A DNA stretch of 64,000 nucleotides, taken from the sequence record MT612989.1. One strand, written 5' to 3'. Positions within the stretch are counted from its first letter, which is position 1. Every line of letters begins with the position of its first letter. The notes below the pieces were generated by a model. It saw nothing but the letters and a program-made list of their open reading frames with translations. It was not told where the DNA came from and searched no databases. Positions 9,204-47,440 of this stretch are shown piece by piece. Made by a program: the position numbers and the translations under genes.

Positions 9204-10886
9204 TTATACTTTTAGTACAAATGATTCATGGTCGATAGTAACATTAGCCGCTGTACTAGCCAATACTCGAATCTCACTCAAGTCATCTAGATTCGCAACG
9301 TTAGTGATTGTAACTGGAGTAACTTGGTTTGCACGAAGCGTACGTGTTTTCTCGATTGATGAGCTTGTGCCGTTATCATGATCGAAATCAATTCGAATCG
9401 TGATTGTAGTGTTTACTGGTGAAACAACAACCCAATGAATAGACATCGTTTTGCTCAATGATAGACCGTTACGTGTCAATACACCACCTGCATACGTGTA
9501 ACCACTCACGTCTGTCTCAAGATTGAATAAACTGAATACATCTGTAGGTGTAGTTGTCAAATCAACTGTACTCGGAGTATCCGAAGACAATAATGCATGA
9601 TCCAACTGTGCTTCAAGTTCCAGAACACGAGCACGCAATGTACCCACTTCGCTATCACTCTGACCAACTACAGTCAATAGACCGTCAACGTCTGCCTGAG
9701 CAGATTCAACTAAGCCACGGTTTTCTTGAATCGTGTACCATGCAGTAAATTCAACAGGGTTTGTACGCTCACCTAGACTAGACTCAAGCTGTGACACTCT
9801 GTAAGACACTGTGCCAGTTTCTGCGTCAGTAGCCCCTAAACGACCCCACAATCTATTGATATCGTCGTTAAACGTCGATAGACGAGCTTTCATGCTACCC
9901 GAGTACACGTCATCTACTGCGTATGAACCGATATCAGTTGACATTTCAATAAATAAATTAGTAACGGAGCCAATCTGTGCCTGATTATCTGCAATTGTAA
10001 CTTCATTCGCGCTAACGCGATCAAGTAGACCTGTAGTCGGTGTCTCAACTTCCTGTTGTAATAATGCAATATCTGATGCATTGTCTGAAATAGAACTTTC
10101 AGCATCATCAAGACGAAGATACACGGGACGAGCAGGGTCGGCATCTGCCGTTTCACCTAGTTCATCACGAATCTGATCAACAGAACCAACTTGCGAGTTT
10201 TGCTCTAGTTCGTATAAACGACCGTTGATTGAAAGCGGGATTGCGTTCTCGCCAATTTCAGCGTTGATCGTAGCTGTTTTGTTGTACAGATCTTCAATCT
10301 GATATTTTATACCAGTTGGGTTTGTACTAGGCGATGGGTTGCCGTTGACATCGTAGTTGCGGTCATTACCAATACGACGCTTGATGAAATATAGATCTTT
10401 ACGAACTGTATCATTGTTTTCAACTTCGTTTGGAATATCTAGGCTGTTACGAACACCAATATCTGCTTCAACATCTTCGATGCCTTTATGCAGACCTGTT
10501 GCAAGTACGTCAACACTACTCGGTACACCGATGTCATCAATGACGTTAGTCATTTGACCTTCAAGTACATCAATATCAAACTCGTTTTGTGATACACGAG
10601 AACCCAAGTTAGCGTCACCGCCACCTGTCAGTTCATTAACAGTATCAACAAGTTCTTCAATTGCGCTTTGCTGTGCTTTTGTGTTGTAATGAGAGTTTAG
10701 AACGTTTTCTTGAATCTGTACTCCTGCGCGGTTTAATACACCGTCTGAAGTCGTGTCACCAGAAGCACCGTTGATGCTTTCACCGTTCTTAGCCCAATTG
10801 ATTCGAGTCTGATCGGGACGTTGAGAAGGATCTGGTTGACCATTTACATATCTAAGCTCTTCAATGATAGGCTTTTGAATTGTCAT
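9204..10886 (-). CDS. wac: Fibritin (whisker)
   Basis: RINWAKNGE, GVLNRAGVQIQEN N-terminus, segmented coiled coil; position between 12 and 13. Confidence 0.88.
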   Translation of the reverse strand: MTIQKPIIEELRYVNGQPDPSQRPDQTRINWAKNGESINGASGDTTSDGVLNRAGVQIQENVLNSHYNTKAQQSAIEELVDTVNELTGGGDANLGSRVSQNEFDIDVLEGQMTNVIDDIGVPSSVDVLATGLHKGIEDVEADIGVRNSLDIPNEVENNDTVRKDLYFIKRRIGNDRNYDVNGNPSPSTNPTGIKYQIEDLYNKTATINAEIGENAIPLSINGRLYELEQNSQVGSVDQIRDELGETADADPARPVYLRLDDAESSISDNASDIALLQQEVETPTTGLLDRVSANEVTIADNQAQIGSVTNLFIEMSTDIGSYAVDDVYSGSMKARLSTFNDDINRLWGRLGATDAETGTVSYRVSQLESSLGERTNPVEFTAWYTIQENRGLVESAQADVDGLLTVVGQSDSEVGTLRARVLELEAQLDHALLSSDTPSTVDLTTTPTDVFSLFNLETDVSGYTYAGGVLTRNGLSLSKTMSIHWVVVSPVNTTITIRIDFDHDNGTSSSIEKTRTLRANQVTPVTITNVANLDDLSEIRVLASTAANVTIDHESFVLKV

Positions 10887-37772: not shown

Positions 37773-38039
37773 ATGTCACAACAAACTGCTGAACAAGTAA
37801 TCGAACAGAAAGACGCACAAATCAAAGATCTTAAAGTGCGTACCTTTGACCTACAAGAGACTCTTCAAGAAGAGCGCAATTCTTTTGGTCAGTTCGTGGG
37901 TGTACTAGCTCAACTACTCGATTTCGATCAGACGCAAGCAAGTTCTCTACAGAACTACGTTGACGAAATCGCAATTCTAACCGGTAAAGCTGAACGTCCT
38001 GCTGAAGGCGACGGCGAACAAGAAAAAGACGCTGAATAA
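37773..38039 (+). CDS. gp57A: Tail fibre assembly chaperone
   Basis: 88 aa coiled coil, LKVRTFDLQE; beside genes 1 and 57B. Confidence 0.75.
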   Translation: MSQQTAEQVIEQKDAQIKDLKVRTFDLQETLQEERNSFGQFVGVLAQLLDFDQTQASSLQNYVDEIAILTGKAERPAEGDGEQEKDAE

Positions 38040-38494
38040 TGAAACTATCTAAGTTCCTTGAAAGTCAGGGAACTTACGTTGGTATTAGATTAGACGAGGC
38101 GAGTAAGCAAGAGTTAGTTCGATTGCAGAAAACGCTTCGTCTAAAAAATCCGTTAGAACCAGATAAATTTCACGTGACTGTGCTTTATAGTCGTAAGCAA
38201 ATTGATGTACCTGTTGTCGATACCACTTTCGTTGCTACTGTTGAACATATCGACTGTTGGAAAACGCAAGACGGCAAATATGCAGTTGTTGCTAAGATGG
38301 TATGTCCAGAACTTGTAGAACGTCACGATGATCTTATCTCTATCGGTGGTACTCACGACTACCCTGACTATACCCCTCACGTTACGTTGTCTTATGACGA
38401 CGCGATCACACCTATGCCCGTCAACGCTGAAGTTCGGCTTGTTGATGAATATCTTGAACCACTTGATTTAAATTGGGTTGATAGTAATGACTGA
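38039..38494 (+). CDS. gp57B: 2H phosphoesterase, gp57B/Acb1 anti-CBASS nuclease family
   Basis: Two HxT motifs (FHVTVLYSR, PHVTLSY), GGTHDYPDYTPH, syntenic with 57A. Confidence 0.88.
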   Translation: MKLSKFLESQGTYVGIRLDEASKQELVRLQKTLRLKNPLEPDKFHVTVLYSRKQIDVPVVDTTFVATVEHIDCWKTQDGKYAVVAKMVCPELVERHDDLISIGGTHDYPDYTPHVTLSYDDAITPMPVNAEVRLVDEYLEPLDLNWVDSND

Positions 38495-38741
38495 TTTATC
38501 TACTGAAGCAGTATTAAAGAAGTACAATGAAGCTCCCGAAACTCTAACTACTGAAGAGAACGTTGTATTATTGACGTATATCATCGGTATGCAGACCGAT
38601 CAGATTGCTTTACTTAAAGAGAACAACAAACTTTACGATAAAGCTATCACTGAGCTTCAACAAGCTGTATCTCAGCTTCAAATCAAGCACGCTGCGCTTG
38701 AACGAGGTGAGACAGAAAGCGGTATCATTCTTTCAGTATAA
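38487..38741 (+). CDS. Hypothetical coiled-coil protein
   Basis: 84 aa from ATG 38487, overlaps 57B stop. Confidence 0.7.
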   Translation: MTDLSTEAVLKKYNEAPETLTTEENVVLLTYIIGMQTDQIALLKENNKLYDKAITELQQAVSQLQIKHAALERGETESGIILSV

Positions 38742-38758
38742 AAACTTTCAAAAAGTTG

Positions 38759-38879
38759 TTGACTTATTCTGAAAAGCATGTAGAATGTATTTCATCGAGT
38801 CGAGAGACAGAACACAAACTTTCAACTCGATGAAATATTTGAAAAAAGTTGTTGACTTACACTGAAATGATGTTAAGAT
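38759..38879 (+). promoter_or_regulatory. Two tandem early promoters heading the tRNA/ncRNA cluster
   Basis: AAAAAGTTG-TTGACT..TAGAAT (38759-38786) and AAAAAAGTTG-TTGACT..TAAGAT (38852-38879), with A-tract UP elements. Confidence 0.8.
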
Positions 38880-38887
38880 TAACACAG

Positions 38888-38996
38888 TTGATTAAGCGAG
38901 CTAAGTTCATCGTTCTCGCCTCTTATTGAAGATGAACAATATTGATTAAGCAGACTAAACTCATCGTTTCTGCCTCTTCTCTGAAGATGAGTAATA
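38888..38996 (+). ncRNA. Two tandem H-type pseudoknot units
   Basis: 54/55-nt repeats; P1 GCGAG/CTCGC vs GCAGA/TCTGC, P2 GTTCATC/GATGAAC vs ACTCATC/GATGAGT. Confidence 0.7.
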
Positions 38997-39144
38997 TTTT
39001 AAATGTGCGTTAGCCGCAATGAATACATGGAGCCAGTATACGTTCTGGCGTGCAGGGATACTCTTAGCGGACGAATTCTCAATCAAAAACTAGCTGAGTT
39101 AAAATTCGCTCAGTCGGCGTGCAAGTAGCGCACATTTAAAATAT
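38994..39144 (+). ncRNA. Structured RNA closed by 16-bp stem
   Basis: ATATTTTAAATGTGCG/CGCACATTTAAAATAT; internal GCCAG/CTGGC hairpin; no ORF. Confidence 0.6.
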
Positions 39145-39159
39145 CGAGAGTACATTGGT

Positions 39160-39282
39160 CGAGTGTTGGTGTAGTGGCAGCACACGTAGCATACTGTAAT
39201 CAGACATGATTATATTCAGCAACCAATTTACGCATATCATAGGGAGATCGTGGGAACGGTTCGATTCCGTTACACTCGACCA
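39160..39282 (+). ncRNA. tRNA-like RNA A with enlarged anticodon arm carrying the CWGCA motif
   Basis: Acceptor CGAGTGT/ACACTCG-A-CCA, D arm, T arm AACGG-TTCGATT-CCGTT; motif G39208, CAGCAA 39217. Confidence 0.8.
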
Positions 39283-39315
39283 ATGTACTCTCACTAACAA
39301 AGCGAGGTGGACAAT

Positions 39316-39471
39316 TTGATTGTATATCTTCTCGCACTAGTATTCATCGTCCTCTTTGCCTTGGACATTGAAGAAGAAAAGGTGCGCATTCATACTTTTG
39401 CGCTAATCACATGCGAACGGGTCATTCATCCCGTAATTAAAGCGCACGATTCCAGATTGTGTTTTGATTAG
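39316..39471 (+). CDS. Possible small membrane protein (51 aa, TTG start)
   Basis: GAGG RBS, N-terminal hydrophobic run LIVYLLALVFIVLFAL. Confidence 0.4.
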   Translation: MIVYLLALVFIVLFALDIEEEKVRIHTFALITCERVIHPVIKAHDSRLCFD

Positions 39472-39541
39472 CTAAGGCAAATATAACTAGAGGATTTTTG
39501 GTGCTTGTGGTTAATCACAAGCACTCTCAAGAACATATTGA

Positions 39542-39663
39542 GCAGGGTTGGTGTAGTGGCTAGCACACGTAGCATAAACGCAAGCTGTTAAGTTTGTATT
39601 CTGCAATCAATTTAGCATATCATTTCCAAGATCGTGACGCAGGTTCGAATCCTGCACCCTGCT
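39542..39663 (+). ncRNA. tRNA-like RNA B (paralogue of A)
   Basis: Acceptor GCAGGGT/ACCCTGC, T arm GCAGG-TTCGAAT-CCTGC, no encoded CCA; motif G39592, CTGCAA 39601. Confidence 0.8.
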
Positions 39664-39681
39664 CAATATGTTTTTACATTG

Positions 39682-39794
39682 GTGAAGTTAGTTCAGTTGG
39701 TTAGAATGCCGGCCAAAAAAACGAAGTCTGATAAGATTTCATTCTGCATTCACATGCACGCCGGAGGTCGCAGGTTCGAGTCCTGCACTTCACC
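39682..39794 (+). ncRNA. tRNA-like RNA C (tRNA-Asp-like body, anticodon replaced by motif insert)
   Basis: GTTCAGTTGGTTAGAATGCCGGCC...CACGCCGGAGGTCGCAGGTTCGAGTCC; motif G39735, CTGCAT 39744. Confidence 0.8.
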
Positions 39795-39804
39795 TTCAAA
39801 TTCT

Positions 39805-39929
39805 GGAGAGTTAGCTCAGTCTGGTAGAGCAAAAGAATGTTAAAGAATACTGACAAGCATTCATGCTGCAAACCTTAATAACTAGGTAAATCTTTTTGTC
39901 ACGTGGTTCAAATCCCGTACTCTCCACCA
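39805..39929 (+). ncRNA. tRNA-like RNA D with motif insert
   Basis: GGAGAGT/ACTCTCC-A-CCA, canonical D arm, AAAGA/TCTTT stem; motif G39857, CTGCAA 39866. Confidence 0.8.
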
Positions 39930-39943
39930 ATTTTCGAGGGTTT

Positions 39944-40312
39944 ATGAATAAGTTTAATGACATAAATGACGAACTTGATTGTATATTGCATCGTTGTGAG
40001 ATTGTAAAGCGCAATCTTCGAAAATATTGTACATTTGCTGTTGAAATGCAGTATAGACTTATGATAAACTTCATTGGCATGGGTTGCTATCAACAAGTTC
40101 TGCCGATATTAGACAATCTAAATTATCACCCTGATACAAGTCAGTTTGATAATATTGAGATTATGCAAACTATAAAAGAATTGATGAAATGTGCAGATAA
40201 GCTCGATTTGCTGCATCAACAAGACGCATTTCATCAAATTAAATCGACTGCTCGTATTACAGAAGAAGCAAACATCTTCGCTGCGAAAGTTGGTCGATTT
40301 CTAGAGAAATGA
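39944..40312 (+). CDS. Hypothetical protein (122 aa)
   Basis: GAGGG RBS and ATG 39944; the longer track ORF overlaps RNA D. Confidence 0.75.
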   Translation: MNKFNDINDELDCILHRCEIVKRNLRKYCTFAVEMQYRLMINFIGMGCYQQVLPILDNLNYHPDTSQFDNIEIMQTIKELMKCADKLDLLHQQDAFHQIKSTARITEEANIFAAKVGRFLEK

Positions 40313-40313
40313 T

Positions 40314-40391
40314 GGCCCTATAGCTCAACACGGTTAGAGCAACCGACTCATAATCGGTAGGTTACAGGTTCGAGTCCTGTTGGGGTCACCA
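40314..40391 (+). tRNA. tRNA CAT, Ile2-like (or Met)
   Basis: Cloverleaf, loop CTCATAA, GGCCC acceptor resembling ileX, CCA. Confidence 0.85.
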
Positions 40392-40411
40392 AAATAAATT
40401 GAAAAAAGTTG

Positions 40412-40440
40412 TTGACAGACGTTTCATCAACGTGTAGTAT
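40412..40440 (+). promoter_or_regulatory. Early promoter
   Basis: A tract, TTGACA-17-TAGTAT. Confidence 0.8.
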
Positions 40441-40470
40441 ACACATTATCAACTACACGAGGAAAACATT

Positions 40471-40701
40471 ATGTCACATAAATTGCTAGTTATCACATCA
40501 ATGCACGGTTGCTACGTCGATTACGATTTCAGAACTGAAATGTTTGACAGATACATGTGTGATGTTGTGATTCCGAACGACTCTGTTGTTTTGTACTCGG
40601 GTACAGTTTCAATAGATGAAATTCGAGCAGTTGCGAACGAATGTTACGCTGACATCAAGATTGAAGAAGTCAGTGATGATGTTTTTGACAGCTATCTTTA
40701 A
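40471..40701 (+). CDS. Hypothetical protein (76 aa)
   Basis: GAGG RBS, downstream of promoter. Confidence 0.75.
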   Translation: MSHKLLVITSMHGCYVDYDFRTEMFDRYMCDVVIPNDSVVLYSGTVSIDEIRAVANECYADIKIEEVSDDVFDSYL

Positions 40702-40705
40702 AAAT

Positions 40706-40945
40706 GCCGCTAACTGGCGTACAATACACAGTGTATTCCCAACATTAGTGCAGACGTAGGCTCGCAACCTACGTTGGTACCGAATCACTGGGACCGAGTA
40801 GAAAGTGCATGTGAGATGTCGAAGTCTTGTATGTAGAAATAACGCTCGGCTGCTCTGAAATGCTGATTAGCTCTTACTTCGAAACTCTAATTGGGTGGAA
40901 GAGGTGTTGTGTTTGACGTGTGTTCGATTCACACGAGCGGCGCCA
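40706..40945 (+). ncRNA. 240-nt RNA with tRNA-like ends (tmRNA-like topology)
   Basis: GCCGCT/AGCGGC acceptor, G-CCA end, T arm GTGTG-TTCGATT-CACAC, ACAATAC/GTGTTGT closing helix. Confidence 0.65.
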
Positions 40946-40958
40946 AGAGGAAATTATA

Positions 40959-41480
40959 ATGAAACCATTGAAGTTCGTTGAGGCGTTCTCTAAAGAAGAA
41001 CGTGCTGCTATGACGATTGAAGAACGTAGCAGACTTCGTAAAATATATAACGAACGCTATCAAGAGTATGTTGATAAGTACATCAATGTATTCACTCGAA
41101 AAGACTTTCGAAGAGAGCGTTGCTGGGTTATTCTTGCACGATGTAAAAAGACTGGTGAAATCATCGGTCGAATTGAAAATAGTTTTAGTATGGGATGGTC
41201 TAAAGAACGTGTTCGTGTTATTCGACCGTATCTAAACGGTAATTTCACGGGCGATGATCGCTTCTCTAAAGCTGAGTACAACAAAGCGTGTGCTGAGTAC
41301 ATAACTCATCATGAGAAACAAGTAAAGTCTCTCAGAGAAGCTTACAAAGACACTCACGACGTTTTCTTATCTCGTGTGGGTAGTAAGAACTGTCCTGTTT
41401 CTATTGATTGGGATACGTATTACAGTAAAAAAGACAAACGAAACTTTGAATATCGAAATTTGAAATTCAAAGTTAAATAA
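40959..41480 (+). CDS. Hypothetical basic protein (173 aa)
   Basis: GAGG RBS, ATG 40959. Confidence 0.75.
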   Translation: MKPLKFVEAFSKEERAAMTIEERSRLRKIYNERYQEYVDKYINVFTRKDFRRERCWVILARCKKTGEIIGRIENSFSMGWSKERVRVIRPYLNGNFTGDDRFSKAEYNKACAEYITHHEKQVKSLREAYKDTHDVFLSRVGSKNCPVSIDWDTYYSKKDKRNFEYRNLKFKVK

Positions 41481-41485
41481 TTCAT

Positions 41486-41601
41486 AGTCGGGTAGCTCAG
41501 TGGTAGAGCACGAAGAATGATACTGACAAGTATCGCTCCAGCACTCCTTCAATTGCCTGTTAAGCACGTGGTCGCTGGTTCGAATCCAGCCCCGACTACC
41601 A
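41486..41601 (+). ncRNA. tRNA-like RNA E: GTT anticodon arm interrupted by 41-nt motif insert
   Basis: AGTCGGG/CCCGACT-A-CCA; CG[insert]TGC-CTGTTAA-GCACG; motif G41530, CAGCAC 41539. Confidence 0.8.
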
Positions 41602-41627
41602 TTTTTGATAAACTAGTGAGGTATAAC

Positions 41628-41864
41628 ATGAGCGGAACATTTAATATCAACAAAACGTTACTGACTCCGAAACAATTGCGCAATCTAACAGATGAGCGTC
41701 TGAATGAATATCGCAAGTCGTTTCGTAAGCCTCTTGGGTTTTTGAAGCATCTGAACGATACAAACGAATTGACTTCAGATCAGCACAAGAAATTCGTTGA
41801 GCTTAATAAGCACTACAACGACGAAATTCTTGCTGAAATGAACAAGCGAAAACACTTAGGTTAA
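41628..41864 (+). CDS. Hypothetical protein (78 aa)
   Basis: GAGG RBS, ATG 41628; the track start lies inside RNA E. Confidence 0.7.
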   Translation: MSGTFNINKTLLTPKQLRNLTDERLNEYRKSFRKPLGFLKHLNDTNELTSDQHKKFVELNKHYNDEILAEMNKRKHLG

Positions 41865-41991
41865 TAAAATCGCAGAAAATTGATAATTTTTTTCAATTTT
41901 CTGCGAAAATACCGCAAATCGTCAGATTTAGTGTTATAAGTACTATAAAGAAACAAAACAAATTTTAATTTTTATTTCAAGAGAGCATTCA

Positions 41992-42105
41992 ATGACGCAT
42001 TCGTTTACACATTCATCTGAGACATTACGCAGCGATTTTCTGCGCTCAGAATTCGTGTATCTAGCGAATCCGATTGCGAACCAGAAGTGGGATACCCTCT
42101 TGTAG
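41992..42105 (+). CDS. Possible 37-aa peptide MTHSFTHSSETLRS...
   Basis: AGAGAG RBS-like, followed by terminator. Confidence 0.35.
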   Translation: MTHSFTHSSETLRSDFLRSEFVYLANPIANQKWDTLL

Positions 42106-42134
42106 TCCGATAGTATAACATAGAAGTATACTTG

Positions 42135-42158
42135 AGGACGCAAATAGCGTCCTTTTTT
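42135..42158 (+). terminator. Rho-independent terminator
   Basis: AGGACGC/GCGTCCT then T tract. Confidence 0.8.
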
Positions 42159-42235
42159 ATGGGCGTAAGAAAGTTAAGAAATTTTGTTTAACGTACTTTG
42201 ATTACAGAGTATGATAAACAAAGTTAAAGAACAAA

Positions 42236-42309
42236 CGGGACGTGGCGTAAAGGTAGCGTTCATGCTTTGGGAGCATGTGGTAAGAGTTCGAGTCTCTTCG
42301 TCCCGACCA
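42236..42309 (+). tRNA. tRNA-Pro(TGG)
   Basis: CATGC-TTTGGGA-GCATG, CCA. Confidence 0.92.
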
Positions 42310-42318
42310 ATTTAAAAT

Positions 42319-42395
42319 CCGTGACTAGCTCAATCTGGTAGAGTACTCCGTTTGGGGCGGAGAAGTTAAGCGTTCGAATCGCTTGTCACGGACCA
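42319..42395 (+). tRNA. tRNA-Pro(TGG), second copy
   Basis: CTCCG-TTTGGGG-CGGAG, CCA. Confidence 0.9.
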
Positions 42396-42403
42396 GTTTT
42401 AAT

Positions 42404-42479
42404 GCCCGATTAGCTCAATTGGAAGAGCAGCGCCCTACGAAGGCGAAGGTTACAAGTTCGAATCTTGTATTGGGTGCCA
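42404..42479 (+). tRNA. tRNA-Arg(ACG)
   Basis: Loop CTACGAA, CCA. Confidence 0.92.
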
Positions 42480-42682
42480 GTTAGTGTTGTTTGATTGAAG
42501 CTCGCTTTCGCACATTCCCGAAACTGCTTCTACGAATTGATACGCTTAGGACCGTATCTCGTTAAGTACTGTCGAGATGATAGAATTTAACGAACTTTTT
42601 CATAAATTAGTGTTTATGATGTCTTGAGCGAGTGTTAATATTAACACATAGAAAATGAAAACGTTAAGTTCTTCAAAATAAA

Positions 42683-42814
42683 TTCAAAAAGATGTTTACA
42701 ACGATATAAACATCGTGTACAATGAAGAAAAGCGAAACATCATTCAAAATCGAATGAAAAGTTTTTCAAAAAGATGTTTACAACGATAAAAACATCATGT
42801 ACAATGAAGAAAAG
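42683..42814 (+). promoter_or_regulatory. Duplicated 50-bp early promoter unit
   Basis: 42683-42732 and 42765-42814 differ at 2 positions; TTTACA-17-TACAAT. Confidence 0.85.
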
Positions 42815-42832
42815 AAGTTTACAAAATTTAAT

Positions 42833-42909
42833 GCGCAAGTAGCCCAATTGGCAGAGGCACTGGTCTTAGAAACCAGAAGTTAAGAGTTCGAATCTCTTCT
42901 TGCGTACCA
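42833..42909 (+). tRNA. tRNA-Leu(TAG), short variable loop
   Basis: CTGGT-CTTAGAA-ACCAG, CCA. Confidence 0.9.
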
Positions 42910-42910
42910 A

Positions 42911-42985
42911 GCACCCTTAGCTTATCAGGAAAAGCGGCGGATTGAAGTCCCGCAGTGCTCGGTTCGATTCCGAGGGGGTGCACCA
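42911..42985 (+). tRNA. tRNA-Phe(GAA)
   Basis: Loop TTGAAGT, CCA. Confidence 0.85.
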
Positions 42986-43074
42986 TATTATAGCTTGTTT
43001 GTAAGAGTTAAATCAAGCAAGGGGTTTTAGTTTTGGGTTATTTAGCAAACGCTCTTAACGTGAAAATCAAATCT

Positions 43075-43149
43075 GGGTCGTTCGTATAACGGTAGTACAT
43101 CTGGCTTTTAACCAGAACGGTGAGAGTTCGAATCTCTTGCGACCCACCA
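43075..43149 (+). tRNA. tRNA-Lys(TTT)
   Basis: TCTGG-CTTTTAA-CCAGA, CCA. Confidence 0.92.
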
Positions 43150-43160
43150 GATTTTATAAT

Positions 43161-43237
43161 GCGTCGGTAGCTCATCATGGAAGAGCAGGGAGCTTTTAAC
43201 TCTCAGGTGTCTGGTTCGAGTCCAGGGCGGCGTACCA
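43161..43237 (+). tRNA. tRNA-Lys(TTT), second copy
   Basis: GGGAG-CTTTTAA-CTCTC, CCA. Confidence 0.92.
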
Positions 43238-43300
43238 AATTAGATACATTGTGTATCGCTTTGCAAGTTAGATAGCTTGCAAATCAATATACAATTTAAT

Positions 43301-43375
43301 TCTCCCGTGGACTAACGGTAGGTCATCACCCTTTCAAGGTGAAGTGCGCGAGTTCGAATCTCGTCGGGAGAACCA
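43301..43375 (+). tRNA. tRNA-Glu(TTC)
   Basis: TCACC-CTTTCAA-GGTGA, CCA. Confidence 0.92.
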
Positions 43376-43381
43376 AATTAC

Positions 43382-43467
43382 GGAGCGTACGTCTCAAGGT
43401 GAGACAGGGGACTGTAAATCCCTGACCCTTAACGGGTAGAGAGGTTCGATTCCTCTACGCTCCACCA
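43382..43467 (+). tRNA. tRNA-Tyr(GTA)
   Basis: Loop CTGTAAA, long variable arm, CCA. Confidence 0.92.
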
Positions 43468-43471
43468 GTTT

Positions 43472-43560
43472 TAGCTTGCATACTGCAATTTAACTTAATC
43501 TATTGATCGCTCGGCGAACTCAGTTCAGACAGCGATAAACAGACCAAAGAACGCAAGCTG
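43472..43560 (+). ncRNA. Inter-tRNA RNA K with open-form CWGCA motif
   Basis: GCTTGC-ATA-CTGCAA ... GCAAGC-TG. Confidence 0.65.
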
Positions 43561-43569
43561 TTGAATAAT

Positions 43570-43646
43570 TGCGGGGTAGAGAAGTGGTCATCTCGTCGGT
43601 CTCATAAGCCGGAGAACGCTGGTTCGAATCCAGCCCCACGCAACCA
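43570..43646 (+). tRNA. tRNA-fMet-like (CAT), atypical
   Basis: fMet-like body, loop CTCATAA; GGT/GCC instead of GGG/CCC; extra nt in acceptor 3' strand. Confidence 0.8.
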
Positions 43647-43692
43647 AATTTATTTCGACTAAATATTGTTTTACGCAATAAGGAAAATTACA

Positions 43693-43935
43693 ATGAAAAC
43701 ATTTGATGAATTCATTACCGAGTCGAAAGATGTTACTTTCGGAGTTTCTGGCTCACTTTTTAGTGGTGCAATGGATAGAGAGAGACATCGAAACATGATG
43801 CAAAAACTTGGCGCTGTTAGAGACACCAAATCAAAATCACAAGATAATGTTTGGGTTGTCAGTCAAGCGAATGCTGATGCAGTTGAAGAATATCTTAGTC
43901 AGTTTGATAAGCTGATGTGGGGTAGACACAAATAA
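43693..43935 (+). CDS. Probable internal head protein (80 aa)
   Basis: N-terminus MKTFDEFITE resembles T4 capsid-targeting sequence; ACTAAATA at 43658-43665. Confidence 0.65.
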   Translation: MKTFDEFITESKDVTFGVSGSLFSGAMDRERHRNMMQKLGAVRDTKSKSQDNVWVVSQANADAVEEYLSQFDKLMWGRHK

Positions 43936-43941
43936 TTAATT

Positions 43942-44040
43942 GGAAGGCTTAGCCGAGAGATTCTGGGTAGCGGCAACGGTCTTGAAAACCGTCGGTCACC
44001 GGGAGGTGATGTTAGGGTTCGAATCCCTAGTCTTCCGCCA
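43942..44040 (+). tRNA. tRNA-Ser(TGA), enlarged D loop
   Basis: ACGGT-CTTGAAA-ACCGT, long variable arm, G-CCA. Confidence 0.9.
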
Positions 44041-44104
44041 ATTAGTTAACCGGGAAGTTTAGTCACTTAACCGATTAACACGAGCACTGAAATGTGCTCA
44101 CTTT

Positions 44105-44178
44105 AGTCCCTTAGCTCAACGGTAGAGCGTGCGACCGATAATCGCTTGGTAAGAGTTCGATTCTCTTAGGGACTACCA
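44105..44178 (+). tRNA. tRNA-Ile(GAT)
   Basis: Loop CCGATAA (C33), CCA. Confidence 0.88.
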
Positions 44179-44184
44179 GATTTT

Positions 44185-44258
44185 AGGGGCATGATGTAAA
44201 GGCAGCATGACGGATTCCAAACCCGTTCGTTAGAGTTCGAATCTCTATGCCCCTGCCA
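44185..44258 (+). tRNA. tRNA-Trp(CCA)
   Basis: Loop TTCCAAA, G-CCA. Confidence 0.9.
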
Positions 44259-44262
44259 GTTT

Positions 44263-44322
44263 AAGTAATCTTACAGCAAACAATACAAAACTTTTATTTG
44301 GAAAAAGCAAAAAGGATTACTG
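44263..44322 (+). ncRNA. Inter-tRNA RNA F with open-form motif
   Basis: AA-GTAATC-TTA-CAGCAA ... GATTAC-TG. Confidence 0.7.
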
Positions 44323-44333
44323 TTTAAATTCAA

Positions 44334-44408
44334 GGGTGTGTAACTCAGAGGCAGAGTAGTCGGCTGTTAACCGACAAGTCGAGATTTCGAAATTCTCCAC
44401 GCCCGCCA
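44334..44408 (+). tRNA. tRNA-Asn(GTT)
   Basis: GTCGG-CTGTTAA-CCGAC, G-CCA. Confidence 0.9.
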
Positions 44409-44409
44409 T

Positions 44410-44485
44410 GCTTCATTAACTCAGTTGGTAGAGTGTCTGACTGTTAATCAGAGAGTCGTTGGTTCGAGTCCAACATGAAGCGCCA
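44410..44485 (+). tRNA. tRNA-Asn(GTT), second copy
   Basis: TCTGA-CTGTTAA-TCAGA, G-CCA. Confidence 0.92.
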
Positions 44486-44553
44486 AATTCGGAGAGTCAC
44501 TACCGTTAAGTGTGAACTTGAAAAACAAAGCAACTACTTTAAGTTGTCTTTGG

Positions 44554-44629
44554 GGAGCCGAGGTGTAAGTGGTTGCATGTCTCCCTGTCACGGAGAAGGT
44601 AGCGGGTTCGAAACCCGTCGGTTCCGCCA
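44554..44629 (+). tRNA. tRNA-Asp(GTC)
   Basis: TCTCC-CTGTCAC-GGAGA, G-CCA. Confidence 0.92.
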
Positions 44630-44648
44630 AAGATAATTTAAGAACAAT

Positions 44649-44722
44649 TGGGGATTGGTGTAAAGGCAGCATAACGTACTTTGAATGCGTTGGTATCAGT
44701 TCGAATCTGTTATCCCCAGCCA
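44649..44722 (+). tRNA. tRNA-Gln(TTG)
   Basis: ACGTA-CTTTGAA-TGCGT, G-CCA. Confidence 0.9.
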
Positions 44723-44729
44723 AATACCG

Positions 44730-44845
44730 AAGAGTGTTTTCAGCAAACAATTTACTAATATTCTTATCGGAAAGAAATGTTTAGGGTTCGATTCCCTTTC
44801 AGTGTTGGTATCACTGGTCTGGACGACGCTAGTAATAACACTCAG
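44730..44845 (+). ncRNA. RNA G: motif stem at termini enclosing a T arm and closed acceptor-like hairpin (Y-RNA/YrlA-like)
   Basis: AA-GAGTGT-TTT-CAGCAA ... AGGG-TTCGATT-CCCT, TCAGTG/CACTGG ... ACACTC-AG. Confidence 0.65.
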
Positions 44846-44849
44846 TAAC

Positions 44850-44925
44850 GCCCTGATAGCACAACTGGCAGTGCAGCTCACTTGTAATGAGCAGGTTCGC
44901 GGTTCGAATCCGTGTCAGGGCACCA
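44850..44925 (+). tRNA. tRNA-Thr(TGT)
   Basis: GCTCA-CTTGTAA-TGAGC, CCA. Confidence 0.92.
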
Positions 44926-44949
44926 TTTTCAAACAACTGCGAGAATAAC

Positions 44950-45159
44950 ATGAACTATATTTCTGTATGGTGTGAATATGACATTGGTGGGGATTTCGGT
45001 GGCAACAATAACGAAGATGTTTTTTCCGTTAGTGAAGAATTATCTAATGAAGAAGTTGAAGCAAAAGTTGCTGAATATATTTCTGACATTGTTAGTGAGC
45101 CGATTGAAGAACTTGAAGGTTTATACGGTTGGGAATATATTTCAATCACACAGTTGTAA
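44950..45159 (+). CDS. Hypothetical acidic protein (69 aa)
   Basis: GAGA RBS, ATG 44950. Confidence 0.7.
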   Translation: MNYISVWCEYDIGGDFGGNNNEDVFSVSEELSNEEVEAKVAEYISDIVSEPIEELEGLYGWEYISITQL

Positions 45160-45166
45160 AAAATAT

Positions 45167-45241
45167 GGGCCGTTAGCTTAATTGGGAAAGCGCCTCACTT
45201 GCAATGAGGAAGATAGGGTTCGACTCCCTGCGTGTCCACCA
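45167..45241 (+). tRNA. tRNA-Ala(TGC), irregular acceptor stem
   Basis: CCTCA-CTTGCAA-TGAGG, G3-U70 retained, CCA. Confidence 0.8.
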
Positions 45242-45315
45242 AATTTCGAACACATGAGCGTAGACTCTCTTTACTACCATCGTCTACACTAGTTCATGGT
45301 TCGAATCTTTTCAAT

Positions 45316-45391
45316 GCGCTGTTAGCTCAATTGGAAGAGCACGTCCCTTCTAAGGATGGGGTTATGAGTTCGAATCTCATACGGCGTGCCA
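45316..45391 (+). tRNA. tRNA-Arg(TCT)
   Basis: CGTCC-CTTCTAA-GGATG, CCA. Confidence 0.92.
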
Positions 45392-45450
45392 TATTAAGCT
45401 CTTATCATGCGACGAATGATACTTTGCTTCGGCATATCACGAGCATGGTG

Positions 45451-45568
45451 AGAGAGACAATATACAGCAAACAATTGAAATTACTTAAAAGAAGTGATGA
45501 TCTTAACCTGGGCTGATTTTAACCTGAGCTTGCTTAGGCGCAGCTTGAAAGGAAAGATTCTCTCTGTC
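45451..45568 (+). ncRNA. RNA I with open-form motif (less regular stem)
   Basis: AGAGAGACAATATA-CAGCAA ... ATTCTCTCTGTC. Confidence 0.5.
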
Positions 45569-45574
45569 TAGAAA

Positions 45575-45747
45575 TAGTCAGATAGGCGCGTCGCTGAAAC
45601 AGACGATATTTGCTTGTTGAGAATCAATAAGCTAGTCAACTCCGATTTATGCAAAAGACGAAAAAACACTTCGGTATTGTCTGTACTTAATTCGTCGGAA
45701 ACGACACTGTAGCCGAAAGGCAAGTTTACTAACTTAGTTGTTAGTCG
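45575..45747 (+). ncRNA. Multi-hairpin region with GNRA loops
   Basis: GCTTGTTGA/TCAATAAGC, GTCG-GAAA-CGAC, GCC-GAAA-GGC, ACTAAC/GTTAGT. Confidence 0.45.
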
Positions 45748-45914
45748 TGATACAGGAAGTATCATGTGGTATTATTATGAACGTTTCTAGTCATCGTCAT
45801 GTAAAACAATCAAAACTAAGCAGAGGTAACAGTACCCACTATGTGGTTCCTCACTCAGACCATGAATATATGGTGTCAGCCAGTGTGCGATTAAATGAGT
45901 TAATTACTGCAATT

Positions 45915-45990
45915 GGTGATGTAGCTCAAGTGGCAGAGCAACGCTTTCATACGGCGTAAGATCCGATTTCGAGTATCGGTGTCACCTCCA
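45915..45990 (+). tRNA. Atypical tRNA with CAT anticodon
   Basis: ACGCT-TTCATAC-GGCGT, U73-CCA. Confidence 0.75.
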
Positions 45991-46010
45991 AATTCAAAAA
46001 CAAAGAGGTT

Positions 46011-46175
46011 ACGAAGCATGACTACTTTACACTAAGCAAGGGCAACATACGCGATAAAATTCGATATGTTGAAAAATGTCTCGCGAATGAGACCAACCCG
46101 TTCTTTATAAGAACACTTACTGTAGAGCTTACGAATCTACGTGCAATACGTGATTTGTTCGACGCTTCAGATTAA
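46011..46175 (+). CDS. 54-codon ORF with ACG at start position (non-canonical start or pseudogene)
   Basis: AGAGG RBS just upstream of ACG; open frame KHDYFTLSKGNIRDKIRYVEKCLANE... Confidence 0.4.
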   Translation, partial: TKHDYFTLSKGNIRDKIRYVEKCLANETNPFFIRTLTVELTNLRAIRDLFDASD

Positions 46176-46179
46176 CAAT

Positions 46180-46253
46180 GCGGGTATGATGTAATGGTAG
46201 CATGACGTCCTTCCAAGTCGTTCGTCTCGGTTCGAGTCCGTGTACCCGCTCCA
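46180..46253 (+). tRNA. tRNA-Gly(TCC)
   Basis: Loop CTTCCAA, U-CCA. Confidence 0.9.
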
Positions 46254-46259
46254 AATTTT

Positions 46260-46333
46260 GGTCCCTTAGTATAATGGCAGTACGTCTCTTTTACACAGAG
46301 AAAGAAGTGGCTCGATTCCACTAGGGACTACCA
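46260..46333 (+). tRNA. tRNA-Val(TAC)
   Basis: TCTCT-TTTACAC-AGAGA, CCA. Confidence 0.9.
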
Positions 46334-46356
46334 TTCTTTATGATGAGAAATAAATT

Positions 46357-46596
46357 ATGACGCCTGCATTACTTGAAACTCATGAATACGTAAACCACAA
46401 CCAAATCGAAAAGCTACAGCAAATGGACAGACTTATGTTTGATTGTTGGCGTGCTGGGTATAAACGTGGCAAGATTTTAGAGCTTGCATTGTCGATTGAG
46501 TCTTCAACAACCGAAGCAGACATCGAAATTTATTTCAAAAATATGTTTACAAGAGAACTATCGGCTGATAGTATCTACTTAAAGAAAACTGTATGA
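46357..46596 (+). CDS. Hypothetical protein (79 aa)
   Basis: ORF between tRNA-Val and tRNA-His, GAGA RBS. Confidence 0.7.
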   Translation: MTPALLETHEYVNHNQIEKLQQMDRLMFDCWRAGYKRGKILELALSIESSTTEADIEIYFKNMFTRELSADSIYLKKTV

Positions 46597-46747
46597 CGGA
46601 GTAGTGCTCCGACCGAATGACACACGCAAATGAGTCCGGTTGACAAACGTTATATGTCCCAAAGTATTGCAGGTAGCGACGGCGGTGTTGCTAGTAGATT
46701 TATCTATTTCTCCAAGACATAATGCAAGCTTTTAAAGTGTACTTTGG

Positions 46748-46825
46748 TGTGGCAGTGGGTGAAGTGGAAATACCCCCGGGTTGTGATTCCGGAAGATGCG
46801 GGTTCGATCCCCGTCTGTCACCCCA
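46748..46825 (+). tRNA. tRNA-His(GTG), U at -1
   Basis: CCGGG-TTGTGAT-TCCGG, C73-CCA. Confidence 0.9.
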
Positions 46826-46837
46826 AAGTACATTTAT

Positions 46838-46911
46838 GCTCGAATCGTATAATGGCAGTATGACGGATTGCAAATCCGCAGGTCAGGGTTCGATTCCCTG
46901 TTCGAGCTCCA
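46838..46911 (+). tRNA. tRNA-Cys(GCA)
   Basis: Loop TTGCAAA, U73-CCA. Confidence 0.9.
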
Positions 46912-46913
46912 AT

Positions 46914-46990
46914 GCGCACGTGGTCCAATTGGCAGAGGCATGAGGCTTAAAATCTCAGGGATGGCGGTTCGAATCCGCCCGTGCGTACCA
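46914..46990 (+). tRNA. tRNA-Leu(TAA), short variable loop
   Basis: TGAGG-CTTAAAA-TCTCA, CCA. Confidence 0.9.
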
Positions 46991-47003
46991 AATTCTAGCA
47001 TAA

Positions 47004-47095
47004 GCCGCGTTCTATACGAAGCTAGACTACCGCCGTTGAAAAACGGTCTCAGCCGAGCGAAAGCTGACAGGTGTTAGGGATTAAAGAGTCGCGGC
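47004..47095 (+). ncRNA. Structured inter-tRNA RNA
   Basis: GCCGCG/CGCGGC closing stem, CCGTT-GAAA-AACGG, TCAGC/GCTGA. Confidence 0.5.
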
Positions 47096-47106
47096 AGTTT
47101 ATTCAA

Positions 47107-47183
47107 GCCCAACTAGTCCAATTGGCAGAGGCACTAGTTTCAAACACTAGGAGTTCCGAGTTCGAATCTCGGGTTGGGCACCA
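47107..47183 (+). tRNA. tRNA-Leu(CAA), short variable loop
   Basis: CTAGT-TTCAAAC-ACTAG, CCA. Confidence 0.9.
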
Positions 47184-47279
47184 AATTCACTTAGCAACGC
47201 GAATCGAAAGAGAGTGGATAGACCTGCTAAGAGTCCCGCTAGGTCTTTAAATTATCTAAAGTGGATCTGCGAAGCGCGT

Positions 47280-47314
47280 GGCACACGTCAGCAATAAGAG
47301 CAAATATGTGTCTG
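47280..47314 (+). ncRNA. Minimal open-form motif J
   Basis: GGCACA-CGT-CAGCAA ... TGTGTC-TG. Confidence 0.55.
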
Positions 47315-47351
47315 AGCATGAGAGCAGCATGCCATTAATTGATGAGACGTT

Positions 47352-47440
47352 GGAAGCATGGTCTAAAGGTATGACAGCACCCTGCTAAGGTGTCGGACGT
47401 TAATAGCGTTCTCTGGGTTCGATTCCCAGTGCTTCCGCCA
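47352..47440 (+). tRNA. tRNA-Ser(GCT)
   Basis: GCACC-CTGCTAA-GGTGT, long variable arm, G-CCA. Confidence 0.92.

Follow-up and report, generated by a model that had tools for sequence, protein, structure and literature searches.

Interrupted tRNA-like genes with a split anticodon stem and a conserved internal module in a KVP40-like vibriophage

Described interruptions of tRNA genes and the vibriophage locus

Phage tRNA clusters are usually seen as codon supplements, or as spares against the anticodon nucleases of the host. The closest described relatives of the genes reported here are found in Lak megaphages, which have a bacterial host. These phages carry oversized tRNA genes with conserved "enigmatic introns", and alleles both with and without the intron occur (Devoto et al. 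2019, PMC6784885). The Lak inserts, 79-114 nt in length, interrupt the tRNA at its canonical position 37/38, and a tRNA-like minihelix forms part of them (PMC6784885). Archaeal tRNA introns (bulge-helix-bulge, EndA plus RtcB) are small inserts found at several positions, among them the D loop and the anticodon stem, and their removal restores a standard tRNA. Group I introns of bacteria and phages also interrupt tRNA genes and have a conserved intron RNA. They measure at least about 200 nt, possess a P3-P9 core and sit in the anticodon loop. Meanwhile, the tRNA region of T4-type phages harbors rnaC and rnaD (species 1 and 2 RNAs), and a tRNA-like fold bears extra structured RNA in engineered tRNA scaffolds, the tRNA-miRNA units of MHV68 and bacterial YrlA.

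The window analysed here, a 64,000-nt stretch of sequence record MT612989.1, belongs to a KVP40-like vibriophage. It contains two real, related tRNA-derived genes, A and B, which are members of a family common to many phage tRNA clusters. The inserts of this family resemble Lak introns in being conserved, in matching neither group I introns nor any Rfam family, and in having no known splicing machinery. They differ in size (38-63 nt), in position (mostly the 5' strand of the anticodon stem, or the D loop) and in their conserved core; in A and B the insert lies at 28/29 and has no internal T arm. Insert-free alleles exist in Lak, whereas a search of IMG/VR turned up none belonging to the A/B lineage. 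The Lak introns and the A/B module are the same kind of phenomenon but different elements.

Unlike archaeal introns, the A/B inserts occur in phages of bacterial hosts and have a conserved sequence. The 3' strand of the stem runs through the resulting three-way junction without a break, leaving 0 nt unpaired. By inspection, the A/B junctions lack a bulge-helix-bulge, with its paired 3-nt bulges 4 bp from each other, and an endonuclease was not among seven ORFs scanned near the locus (0/7). In contrast to group I introns, the A/B insert measures 49 nt and lies in a stem; Rfam Intron_gpI gave no match for A and B at E<=1. Searches at gathering thresholds over the window and at E<=1 over 38600-42300 returned only tRNA from Rfam, and no ribozyme, riboswitch or intron family. 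The T4 RNAs are like A and B in location, in length and in being syntenic, but these stable RNAs lack a cloverleaf with a split anticodon stem. The likeness to tRNA scaffolds, MHV68 units and YrlA is a functional analogy only: in all of them, as in A and B, the tRNA-like fold may recruit tRNA-processing enzymes. A YrlA match reached 32 bits where the cut-off is 69; it spans the C/D boundary, not A or B, and was discarded as an artefact caused by neighbouring T and D arms.

Anatomy and conservation of genes A and B

Genes A (39160-39282, 119 nt) and B (39542-39662, 121 nt) are paralogous and lie on the + strand (Table 1). The initial annotation had recognised in both an acceptor stem, D and T arms, shared sequence blocks and a motif hairpin, and had described them as duplicates of which A encodes CCA and B does not. 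All of these features were confirmed at the positions given, and the two genes are 80% identical over 81 nt. Their tRNA body comprises the acceptor stem, a D arm with G18 G19, a 4-nt variable loop and a T arm. The acceptor, D and T helices, including a T loop of the UUCRANY type, have 100% of cells paired across the family, with changes on both sides. The ACCA of A (39279-82) is also the start of the 3' strand of its closing duplex (39279-92), and B ends in UCAA. A folds with a z-score of -7.15 and B with one of -4.58, and none of 200 shuffles folds equally well. Neither gene passes as the uninterrupted 70-95-nt cloverleaf seen by standard tRNA finders, and both were missed by ARAGORN and by Rfam RF00005, even at E<=1. 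A tmRNA identity was rejected, as the 3:70 pair is A-U in both genes (not G3:U70) and there is no tmRNA call in the window.

Table 1 Features of the interrupted tRNA-like genes and their surroundings (positions within the window)
Feature	Position	Strand	Details
Two promoter-like sites	38759-38879	+	38759-86 (10/12 matches) and 38852-79 (9/12 matches)
A, closing duplex 5' strand (leader)	39146-39159	+	GAGAGUACAUUGGU; perfect complement of 39279-92 (ACCAAUGUACUCUC), 14 pairs
A, 5' part	39160-39186	+	Acceptor 5' strand, U8 G9, D arm, A26, C27 G28
A, acceptor stem	39160-66 with 39272-78	+	CGAGUGU with ACACUCG
A, D arm	39169-83	+	GUGU-AGUGGCA-GCAC
A, C27 G28	39185-86	+	First two anticodon-stem pairs
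A, module	39187-39235	+	UAGCAUAC, H1, then UUCAGCAACCAAUUUACGCAU with CAGCA motif
A, hairpin H1	39195-39214	+	Loop GACA 39203-06
A, distal anticodon half	39236-39250	+	P3 AUC 39236-38/GAU 39246-48; loop AUAGGGA 39239-45; C42 G43 39249-50
A, 3' part	39251-39292	+	Variable loop UGGG; T arm 39255-71; acceptor 3' strand 39272-78; ACCA 39279-82
Small ORF between A and B	39307-39471	+	54 aa; hydrophobic N-terminus; GAGGUG upstream
B, closing duplex 5' strand	39529-39541	+	13 bp; pairs with 39663-75
B, 5' part	39542-39569	+	Acceptor 5' strand; D arm 39551-66; A26; C27 G28
B, acceptor stem	39542-48 with 39656-62	+	GCAGGGU with ACCCUGC
B, module	39570-39618	+	UAGCAUAAAC, H1 39580-97 (loop GUUA), then AUUCUGCAAUCAAUUUAGCAU
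B, distal anticodon half	39619-39634	+	P3 AUC 39619-21/GAU 39630-32; 8-nt loop AUUUCCAA 39622-29; C42 G43 39633-34
B, 3' part	39635-39675	+	Variable loop UGAC; T arm 39639-55; acceptor 3' strand 39656-62; U73
C, interrupted tRNA-like gene	39682-39794	+	5-bp stem CCGGC/GCCGG; no CCA
D, interrupted gene	39805-39929	+	Stem AAAGA/UCUUU; AUGUUAA; module at 38/39; CCA encoded
E, A/B-type split stem	41486-41601	+	CG, 41-nt module, UGC-CUGUUAA-GCA, CG; CCA encoded

The roughly 60 nt of A and B do not replace the anticodon arm, as had been thought: an insert of 49 nt is followed there by the distal half of the anticodon stem-loop, which is split. The anticodon stem has 5 bp, split 2 + 3, and a loop of 7-8 nt in the normal place of the anticodon loop. 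C27-G28 pair with C42-G43, and the distal AUC triplet (P3) pairs with nt 39-41. The self-contained 49-nt module is inserted between nt 28 and 29, and it branches off a three-way junction, since the P3 triplet completes the anticodon stem. P3 occurs in relatives in six Watson-Crick versions: AUC/GAU, GAA/UUC, GAU/AUC, UGC/GCA, AGC/GCU and UCC/GGA. Deletion of the 49-nt insert in silico yields clean cloverleaves of 74-76 nt; for A the product has 74 nt and the stem CGAUC/GAUCG. Exhaustive deletions scored with ARAGORN matched the manual parse, but the program was too permissive to discriminate and this agreement was not counted as proof.

Other readings of these motifs were rejected. The hairpin loop CUGNNAAG, on which the "Val", "Phe" and "Cys" calls in phage phi-Grn1 are based, is not an anticodon loop, because C-G and U-A enclose a tetraloop of the GNNA type, whose closing pair covaries from U-A to A-U. 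A pairing of the CAGCAACCAA block with UUGGU (nt 7-11) is not conserved by the metagenome members. By inspection, hammerhead, k-turn or box C/D, and SRP-like readings did not fit.

In B the body and the insert are conserved, and the loop, of 7-9 nt, differs in nearly every orthologue (AUUCAUAA, AUUCUAA, CUUCAAA, AUUUCAA, ACUCUUAAA). The A loop AUAGGGA fits the rule of 7 nt, U33 and a purine at 37, and the triplet in this loop is AGG or UAG, depending on the clade. Across the family, about 40% of loops lack U33 or purine 37, or have 8-9 nt. A also carries C1:G72, A73, G35 G36 G37 and CCA, as do the tRNA-Pro genes of the phage; the window has 28 canonical tRNAs, and C1:G72 together with A73 is found in just two of them, the Pro genes. 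CCA is encoded by 27 of these 28 tRNAs, and by A, D and E as well. Under the reading favored below, A is Pro-like and B degenerate. The proposal that the two RNAs are non-decoding seems likely for B, given its variable loop, but is not established for A, which shows the full bacterial tRNA-Pro signature. As the anticodon arm is present, though split, a spliced product that is an ordinary tRNA is a live possibility.

Every helix of A and B shows compensatory changes across related phages. For the 32 distinct family members, paired cells amount to 95.7%, compared to 64% in shuffles, and the covariation score is 0.78 compared to 0.19 in shuffles; none of 500 shuffles reaches 0.78, and slid controls stay at or below 0.13. 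All seven pairs of H1 show changes on both sides in these members. Phages that differ by about 14% in the flanks of A have the gene itself in identical form (100%). Conservation of the module equals that of the exons and extends to invariant unpaired blocks, and vibriophages and metagenome phages alike have an invariant D arm followed by ACG.

The acceptor stems extend into the flanking DNA, as had been proposed; the 14 bp reported for A held, and the duplex of B proved to be 13 bp rather than 10. Continuous with the acceptor stems, they give uninterrupted leader-trailer duplexes of 21 bp in A and 20 bp in B, matching the roughly 20 bp of an RNase III-type unit. Duplex length is kept through compensatory changes in seven sequence variants for A, which stays at 14 bp in all clades with the help of U.G pairs, and in ten for B. 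Some flank pairs are U.G, which on the opposite strand would be A.C. These real, extended closing stems are compatible with endonucleolytic release. The two promoter-like sites upstream are of the early type, resembling T4-type early promoters, and have near-identical upstream sequences. They are likely the start of a polycistronic transcript that would carry A to D; no terminator-like site was found between them and 41378. The 54-aa ORF between A and B is annotated as a CDS in KVP40 and K566 and had no Pfam match. The A/B region adjoins the anti-defence gene Acb1, and homing endonuclease genes are active in it.

Neighbouring genes and the wider phage family

Three further interrupted genes, C, D and E, lie downstream. 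The 45-nt "loop" of C contains a hairpin of the A/B type and a CUGCA motif, and the Rfam tRNA model recovers C at 53.7 bits with a 45-nt insertion; its G-1:C73 is similar to that of tRNA-His. Without its module, D acquires an Asn-type anticodon arm, of which GUU is retained in all orthologues. E scores 66 bits with the A/B covariance model, and its P3 covaries from UGC/GCA to AGC/GCU. Removing the insert of E in silico leaves a perfect 75-nt tRNA-Asn(GUU) with stem CGUGC/GCACG and loop CUGUUAA. D and E have A73, and the canonical tRNA-Asn genes of the phage have G73. In KVP40, C, D and E are annotated as "tRNA-Pseudo-3/-4/-5" and A and B are unannotated, while in the phi-Grn1 record A appears as "tRNA-OTHER" and B as "tRNA-Cys" (122 nt). 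There are tRNAscan "intron" calls for such loci in phi-Grn1, phi-ST2 and phi-pp2. The split stem, the shared module and the wider family are described in none of these annotations, nor in the literature searched, which did not include the KVP40 genome paper. B, C and D are deleted in the viable isolate TCU-VP03-AIR1.

The A/B lineage can be recognised by its invariant D arm, which is followed by ACGUAGC. Metagenomes contain it in contigs of uncultured phages, and every such copy lies within a tRNA cluster. The lineage was absent from 185,579 cellular genomes, and cultured relatives of the metagenome types were not found. With the family model R1, members score 83-124 bits, compared to up to 46 bits for ordinary tRNAs. 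The module motif is common to all module-bearing genes, and its layout is a hairpin followed by UA-C(AG)CA-AU. Modules of this layout are found elsewhere at 26/27 to 31/32, at 38/39 (as in D) and in the D loop (contig L029). In each of these genes the anticodon loop and discriminator retained by the exon parts are those typical of one amino acid, with identity sets of GUG and G-1:C73 for His, G73 for Asn and Asp, and A73 for Phe. Their loops are often of the GUN or UUN types (Asn, Asp, His, Lys, Glu, Gln). One metagenome contig has eight interrupted genes and no canonical tRNA, and in the stretch seen of some contigs a given amino acid is served only by an interrupted gene. A Lak-like Tyr gene shares a metagenome contig with module-bearing genes. 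In phage D479 the A-type loop AUAGGGA recurs with a similar module on a different tRNA body. No partner protein is shared near the metagenome copies, where only SPFH, SprT-like and HNH proteins and a weak ART match were seen.

Interrupted tRNA genes that extend from a culturable T4-like vibriophage to metagenome phages point to a step of RNA processing, or else a class of tRNA mimics, that has gone unrecognised in bacteria. The Lak introns are not culturable for study, whereas KVP40-type phages, with Vibrio natriegens or V. parahaemolyticus, are.

Possible fates of the module

Based on these findings, we tentatively favor an intron-like module that is removed after transcription from the tRNA-derived genes of this phage family, with release via the closing duplexes; we regard this as quite possible, if short of an even chance. 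A double-strand-specific nuclease, for example host RNase III, would cut the closing duplexes of A and B and free the units from a polycistronic precursor that would include the small ORF. Ordinary tRNA end-trimming would follow, and the module would be excised post-transcriptionally as an intron-like intervening sequence. Because the stacked stem halves keep both junctions adjacent, removal and resealing would leave a tRNA of 74-76 nt. The predicted junctions join CACACG to AUCAUAGGGA in A and GCACG to UGCCUGUUAA in E. A would become a tRNA-Pro-like molecule (C1:G72, A73, CCA, anticodon AGG, G37), while B, having lost a fixed anticodon and CCA, would persist either as a degenerate copy that the phage can spare or as one that carries the module. 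Removal might be performed by a very small ribozyme or, alternatively, by cleavage at the three-way junction and sealing of the resulting nick. Phage Rnl2-type ligases seal nicks in duplex RNA, and to our knowledge no bacterial or phage enzyme removes such inserts. The product of gene 57B was considered as a tRNA ligase partner and rejected, as gp57B is Acb1, an anti-CBASS nuclease. Several observations speak against excision: invariant unpaired blocks are unusual for a discarded spacer, the would-be anticodon loop of B is its least conserved part, and the A loop changes between AGG and UAG by clade in a family in which some 40% of loops are irregular. Insert-free alleles of the A/B lineage are absent from IMG/VR, and the A73 of D and E departs from the canonical G73 of Asn. 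A broader proposition is that the 38-63-nt module is a new class of intervening element, defined by its conserved sequence, its own closing helix, non-canonical sites and a mechanism new to bacteria, or else a new counter-defence "expansion arm" of tRNAs; this we hold rather unlikely.

Nearly as likely as an intron-like module is that the module is retained, and that A and B are stable, non-decoding tRNA mimics of about 120 nt in which the 49-nt arm, either alone or together with the pseudo-anticodon loop, acts as effector. The tRNA body would then give processing, stability and recognition by tRNA-binding factors, and the RNA could act as a decoy or sponge for a host tRNA-directed enzyme (an anticodon nuclease or a modification enzyme) or as a handle for a phage protein, although we know of no partner. 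Retention agrees with purifying selection on the module and its unpaired blocks that is as strong as on the tRNA body, with the conservation in B of body and module but not loop, with the reuse of AUAGGGA and a similar module on another body in phage D479, with the many loops that violate tRNA rules (C33 or A33; 8-9 nt) and with the missing insert-free alleles. The position downstream of T4-early-like promoter sites and beside Acb1 favors it as well, as does the frequency of GUN and UUN loops; the tRNAs for Asn, Asp, His, Lys, Glu and Gln are the usual targets of anticodon nucleases. The viable loss of B to D in TCU-VP03-AIR1 would fit an accessory role. However, an arm with a single function is not expected at the D loop, at 26/27 to 31/32 and at 38/39, each time leaving a perfect tRNA. 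Nor would retention account for the amino-acid identity sets and encoded CCA kept by A, D and E, or for contigs in which, as far as seen, an interrupted gene is the sole source for an amino acid.

The recurrence of one module at varied positions in many tRNA genes could also be explained by DNA-level elements that landed there, the RNA structure being incidental. Such an element could be small, mobile and non-autonomous; it could also be a site of homing or recombination, or a hairpin that is recognised when the DNA is single-stranded. The active homing endonuclease genes of the region are in line with this, as is the combination of a hairpin with a fixed short motif (UAC/UUAC), which we take to recall hairpin-guided transposon ends. 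Yet stem pairs that are U.G would be A.C on the opposite strand, covariation keeps RNA helices that include P3, formed only with exon sequence, and terminal inverted repeats and target duplications are absent. Orthologous copies are also stable throughout a phage genus, and we consider this explanation improbable. Homology to T4 rnaC and rnaD has hardly any probability left. The analogy proposed at the outset stands for the comparable genomic place, in a tRNA cluster downstream of 57A/57B, and the sizes are similar (rnaD 119 nt, rnaC 139 nt), with a T-arm-like hairpin at the end of rnaC. It fails for sequence and structure: against the 83-124 bits of family members, model R1 matches only part of rnaC, at 16.6 bits (E 0.067), and does not match rnaD at all, and both RNAs lack the invariant D arm with ACGUAGC and the module motif. 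Equally remote is the idea that A and B are decaying tRNA pseudogenes, as the KVP40 labels imply for C, D and E. The "pseudo" or "OTHER" labels in KVP40, phi-Grn1 and phi-pp2 and the absence of B, C and D from TCU-VP03-AIR1 would suit decay, but the covariation already contradicts it, with compensatory changes in every helix and nearly all cells paired. The identity of A across phages that differ around it, and a lineage common to distant uncultured phages, argue in the same direction. "Pseudo-tRNA" labels in phage genomes conceal selected RNAs.

Split anticodon stem of the paralogous genes A and B

The tRNA-like genes A and B each encode a complete tRNA with an anticodon stem of 5 bp and a loop of 7-8 nt; a three-way junction between nucleotides 28 and 29 gives rise to a folded module of 49 nt. 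The initial annotation had placed some 60 nt in the position of the anticodon arm; the arm is instead split, and its stem is completed by a newly recognised helix, P3. After A26, C27 and G28 are the sole 5' partners of C42 and G43 in the uninterrupted part of the stem, and nucleotides 39-41 of the 3' strand form P3 with three bases that follow G28 at a distance of about 50 nt. This helix is AUC/GAU in vibriophage A and B, GAA/UUC in most metagenome copies as well as the B-like gene of phage D479, GAU/AUC in a single copy from a metagenome, and UGC/GCA, AGC/GCU or UCC/GGA in relatives with other tRNA bodies. A covariance model (the A/B model) was built from an alignment of 21 family members, and 40 matches were re-aligned. 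Among the 32 distinct sequences obtained, 95.7% of cells were paired, every helix displayed changes on both sides, and the covariation score was 0.78; shuffles scored 0.19, none of 500 reaching 0.78, and slid controls did not exceed 0.13. The 5' side of the module is A-rich; after it come a hairpin of variable sequence, which in vibriophages has a GNNA loop closed by a C-G and a W-W pair, and a conserved 3' side containing UA-C(AG)CA-AU. Read by eye, a short helix that appears to vary among lineages seems to join the module ends.

The other features initially listed for both genes (tRNA-like arms, shared blocks, extended closing stems, a CCA in A only) were all found in the sequence. A has the acceptor stem CGAGUGU/ACACUCG, D and T arms and ACCA, and 14 further perfect pairs between leader and trailer bring its acceptor stem to 21 continuous bp. 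B has the acceptor stem GCAGGGU/ACCCUGC and no CCA; its closing stem does extend into the flanks, by 13 further pairs rather than the 10 first proposed. Fold z-scores were -7.15 for A and -4.58 for B, which share 80% identity over 81 nt. Orthologues occurred in all 51 of the 51 related Vibrio phage records. A is 98-100% identical across the KVP40, nt-1, PVA8 and V09 groups, whereas the whole 541-nt region reaches merely 86-92%, and the more distant K566, D482 and F86 phages carry compensatory substitutions in the acceptor stem, T stem, insert hairpin and flank duplex (the leader-trailer pairing). Some pairs of the flank duplexes are U.G and would read A.C on the opposite strand; the structure under selection is therefore an RNA of the plus strand.

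Gene neighbourhood and tRNA identities

Positions 38700-41700 match Vibrio phage vB_ValM_R11Z at 100% identity and KVP40 at 87.5%; both are T4-like phages of the genus Schizotequatrovirus. The A/B locus stands at the head of the phage tRNA region. ARAGORN detected 28 tRNAs in the window, within 40314-47440, and Rfam matched a tRNA-Ala(UGC) that it had missed (45167-45238; 44.9 bits); these ordinary genes cover all 20 amino acids, with duplicates that include Asn, Lys, Pro and Met. The Rfam tRNA model also matched three oversized genes, C, D and E, with hits at 39682-39794, 39805-39926 and 41486-41598; in each, 45-54 nt lie within the anticodon arm. These are annotated in KVP40 as tRNA-Pseudo-5, tRNA-Pseudo-4 and tRNA-Pseudo-3, respectively; in phi-Grn1, A is labelled 'tRNA-OTHER' and B 'tRNA-Cys' (122 nt).

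From the promoter-like sites to D, the order is hairpin, two 55-nt repeats, 150-nt structured unit, A, 54-aa ORF, hairpin, B, C and D, and no terminator-like site was found between the promoter-like sites and 41378. The promoter-like pair may be a duplicated early promoter unit, and this arrangement suggests an early transcript that is polycistronic and punctuated by long duplexes. The 55-nt repeats folded no better than shuffles. The 150-nt unit is closed by a duplex of about 20 bp (UUUAAAUGUGCG... with ...CGCACAUUUAAA) and had no match in Rfam or to the A/B model. Upstream of the locus, the gp57B homologue (38039-38494) is the anti-CBASS nuclease Acb1 (Pfam E 8e-46), ruling out the RNA ligase label of several public records. 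In T4, 57B likewise precedes the tRNA cluster, which ends in the stable RNAs rnaD and rnaC; homology of A and B to these RNAs, raised initially as an analogy, is unlikely.

Features of the A/B locus and of related loci
Feature	Position	Details
Two promoter-like sites	38759-38786, 38852-38879	upstream sequence near-identical, AAAAAGTTGTTGACTTA
Strong hairpin	38787-38838	z -6.4; directly after first promoter-like site
Two tandem 55-nt repeats	38884-38938, 38939-38993	start UUGAUUAAGC; after second promoter-like site
150-nt structured unit	38994-39143	z -4.3; directly upstream of A
54-aa ORF	39307-39471	hydrophobic N-terminus; between A and B
10-bp hairpin without U run	39500-39525	z -4.5; follows the ORF
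C	39682-39794	G-1:C73 as in tRNA-His; no CCA, no recognisable anticodon
D	39805-39929	AUGUUAA kept, then module at 38/39
E	41486-41601	removal of 41-nt insert in silico gives a perfect 75-nt tRNA-Asn(GUU) with CCA
Oversized tRNA gene array	metagenome contig L029 400-3050 (JAEEGL016079438.1)	at least 8 in a row, no ordinary tRNA
Homing endonuclease gene replacing B-D	L033 1540-2331 (TCU-VP03-AIR1)	breakpoint inside B leader strand

Removal of the insert from A in silico leaves a 74-nt cloverleaf. Among the window tRNAs, C1:G72 with A73 is confined to A and the two tRNA-Pro genes, and A additionally has G35, G36, G37 and CCA; together, these make up the bacterial ProRS identity set. The KVP40 clade has AUAGGGA as its A loop, K566 and F86 have AUUAGGA, and D479 combines AUAGGGA with another body in which C1:G72 is retained. 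B has U73 and lacks CCA, and nearly every lineage has a different B loop, while the body, module and flank duplex of B are kept. B is therefore very unlikely to decode, as the initial annotation had proposed. The GUU of D is present in all orthologues, and both D and E have A73, as opposed to G73 in canonical Asn genes. Two viable isolates, TCU-VP03-AIR1 and AIR2, carry a homing endonuclease gene in place of B, C and D, starting within the B leader, and their A is identical.

Relatives in uncultured phages

A search with an exact pattern of the invariant segment (UUGGUGU ... CACACGUAGC ... GGUUCGA) retrieved copies from IMG/VR and from metagenome contigs that measure 148-208 kb and bear no relation to vibriophages; it gave no matches in 185,579 bacterial and archaeal genomes. 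These copies all lie within large tRNA clusters, some with a tmRNA, and the family is restricted to phage tRNA clusters. Scores against the A/B model were 83-112 bits for the copies from IMG/VR and metagenomes, 109-124 for vibriophage A and B, 59-74 for E and some D479 genes, about 45-53 for C and D, and at most 46 for ordinary tRNAs. The loops enclosed by P3 often resemble real anticodon loops. Copies of the type found in contig L015 combine UUGUGGU with G-1:C73, the hallmark of tRNA-His; other loops are CUGUUAA (Asn), CUUUUAA (Lys), UUUGGGU (Pro), UUUUGGU (Gln) and UUGUCAC (Asp). Loops that break the rules, with C33 or A33, C37, or 8-9 nt, also occur in the family. Several genes of the L029 array carry a hairpin-UUACAAUAU module within the D loop; their anticodon arms, of Asn, Asp or Phe type, are intact, and the discriminator base matches.

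Contig L021 encodes a tRNA-Tyr-like gene of 161 nt (10365-10525, minus strand) in a cluster shared with module-bearing genes; its insert begins ACAGGAG after CUGUA, much like the tRNA-Tyr intron of Lak megaphages. The tmRNA genes of L019 (5144-5448) and L026 (2851-3217), two metagenome phage contigs with members of the family, are one permuted and one standard, and both are inside the tRNA cluster. Several class I-type tRNA genes (Ala, Glu, Lys) of 86-90 nt were also observed in metagenome contigs (L015 4876-4965 and 6149-6236; L026 2336-2421), and their length suggests shorter inserts of another kind.

Fate of the module

The loci themselves are already known, having carried pseudo-tRNA labels ever since annotation of the KVP40 genome, and earlier work describes 'enigmatic' introns in phage tRNAs. 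Neither the literature searched nor the annotations examined described the split anticodon stem, the shared module, its conserved core or the variety of its positions, the closing duplexes, the resemblance of A to tRNA-Pro, or a connection between a culturable vibriophage and uncultured metagenome phages. The module could represent a new class of element.

It is unlikely that A and B are pseudogenes or that the insert is an element acting at the DNA level. We tentatively favour, at somewhat below even probability, an intron-like module that is excised, because homologous-looking modules occupy several different tRNA positions, because removal always gives a standard tRNA with its identity elements kept, and because an earlier study reported conserved introns, not of group I, in tRNAs of phages with a bacterial host (PMC6784885). 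The case for a module retained as an arm on a tRNA mimic is almost as strong, and we regard it as a serious, if slightly less probable, possibility: the module is as constrained as the exons, it contains invariant unpaired blocks, it outlives the anticodon in B, and a search for an insert-free allele found none. A double-strand-specific nuclease would release A and B. The stacked stem halves would hold both junctions side by side, so that excision of the module would leave a nick in duplex RNA. KVP40 presumably has an Rnl2-type ligase. Phage ligases of this type seal nicks in duplex RNA (PMC3884662).
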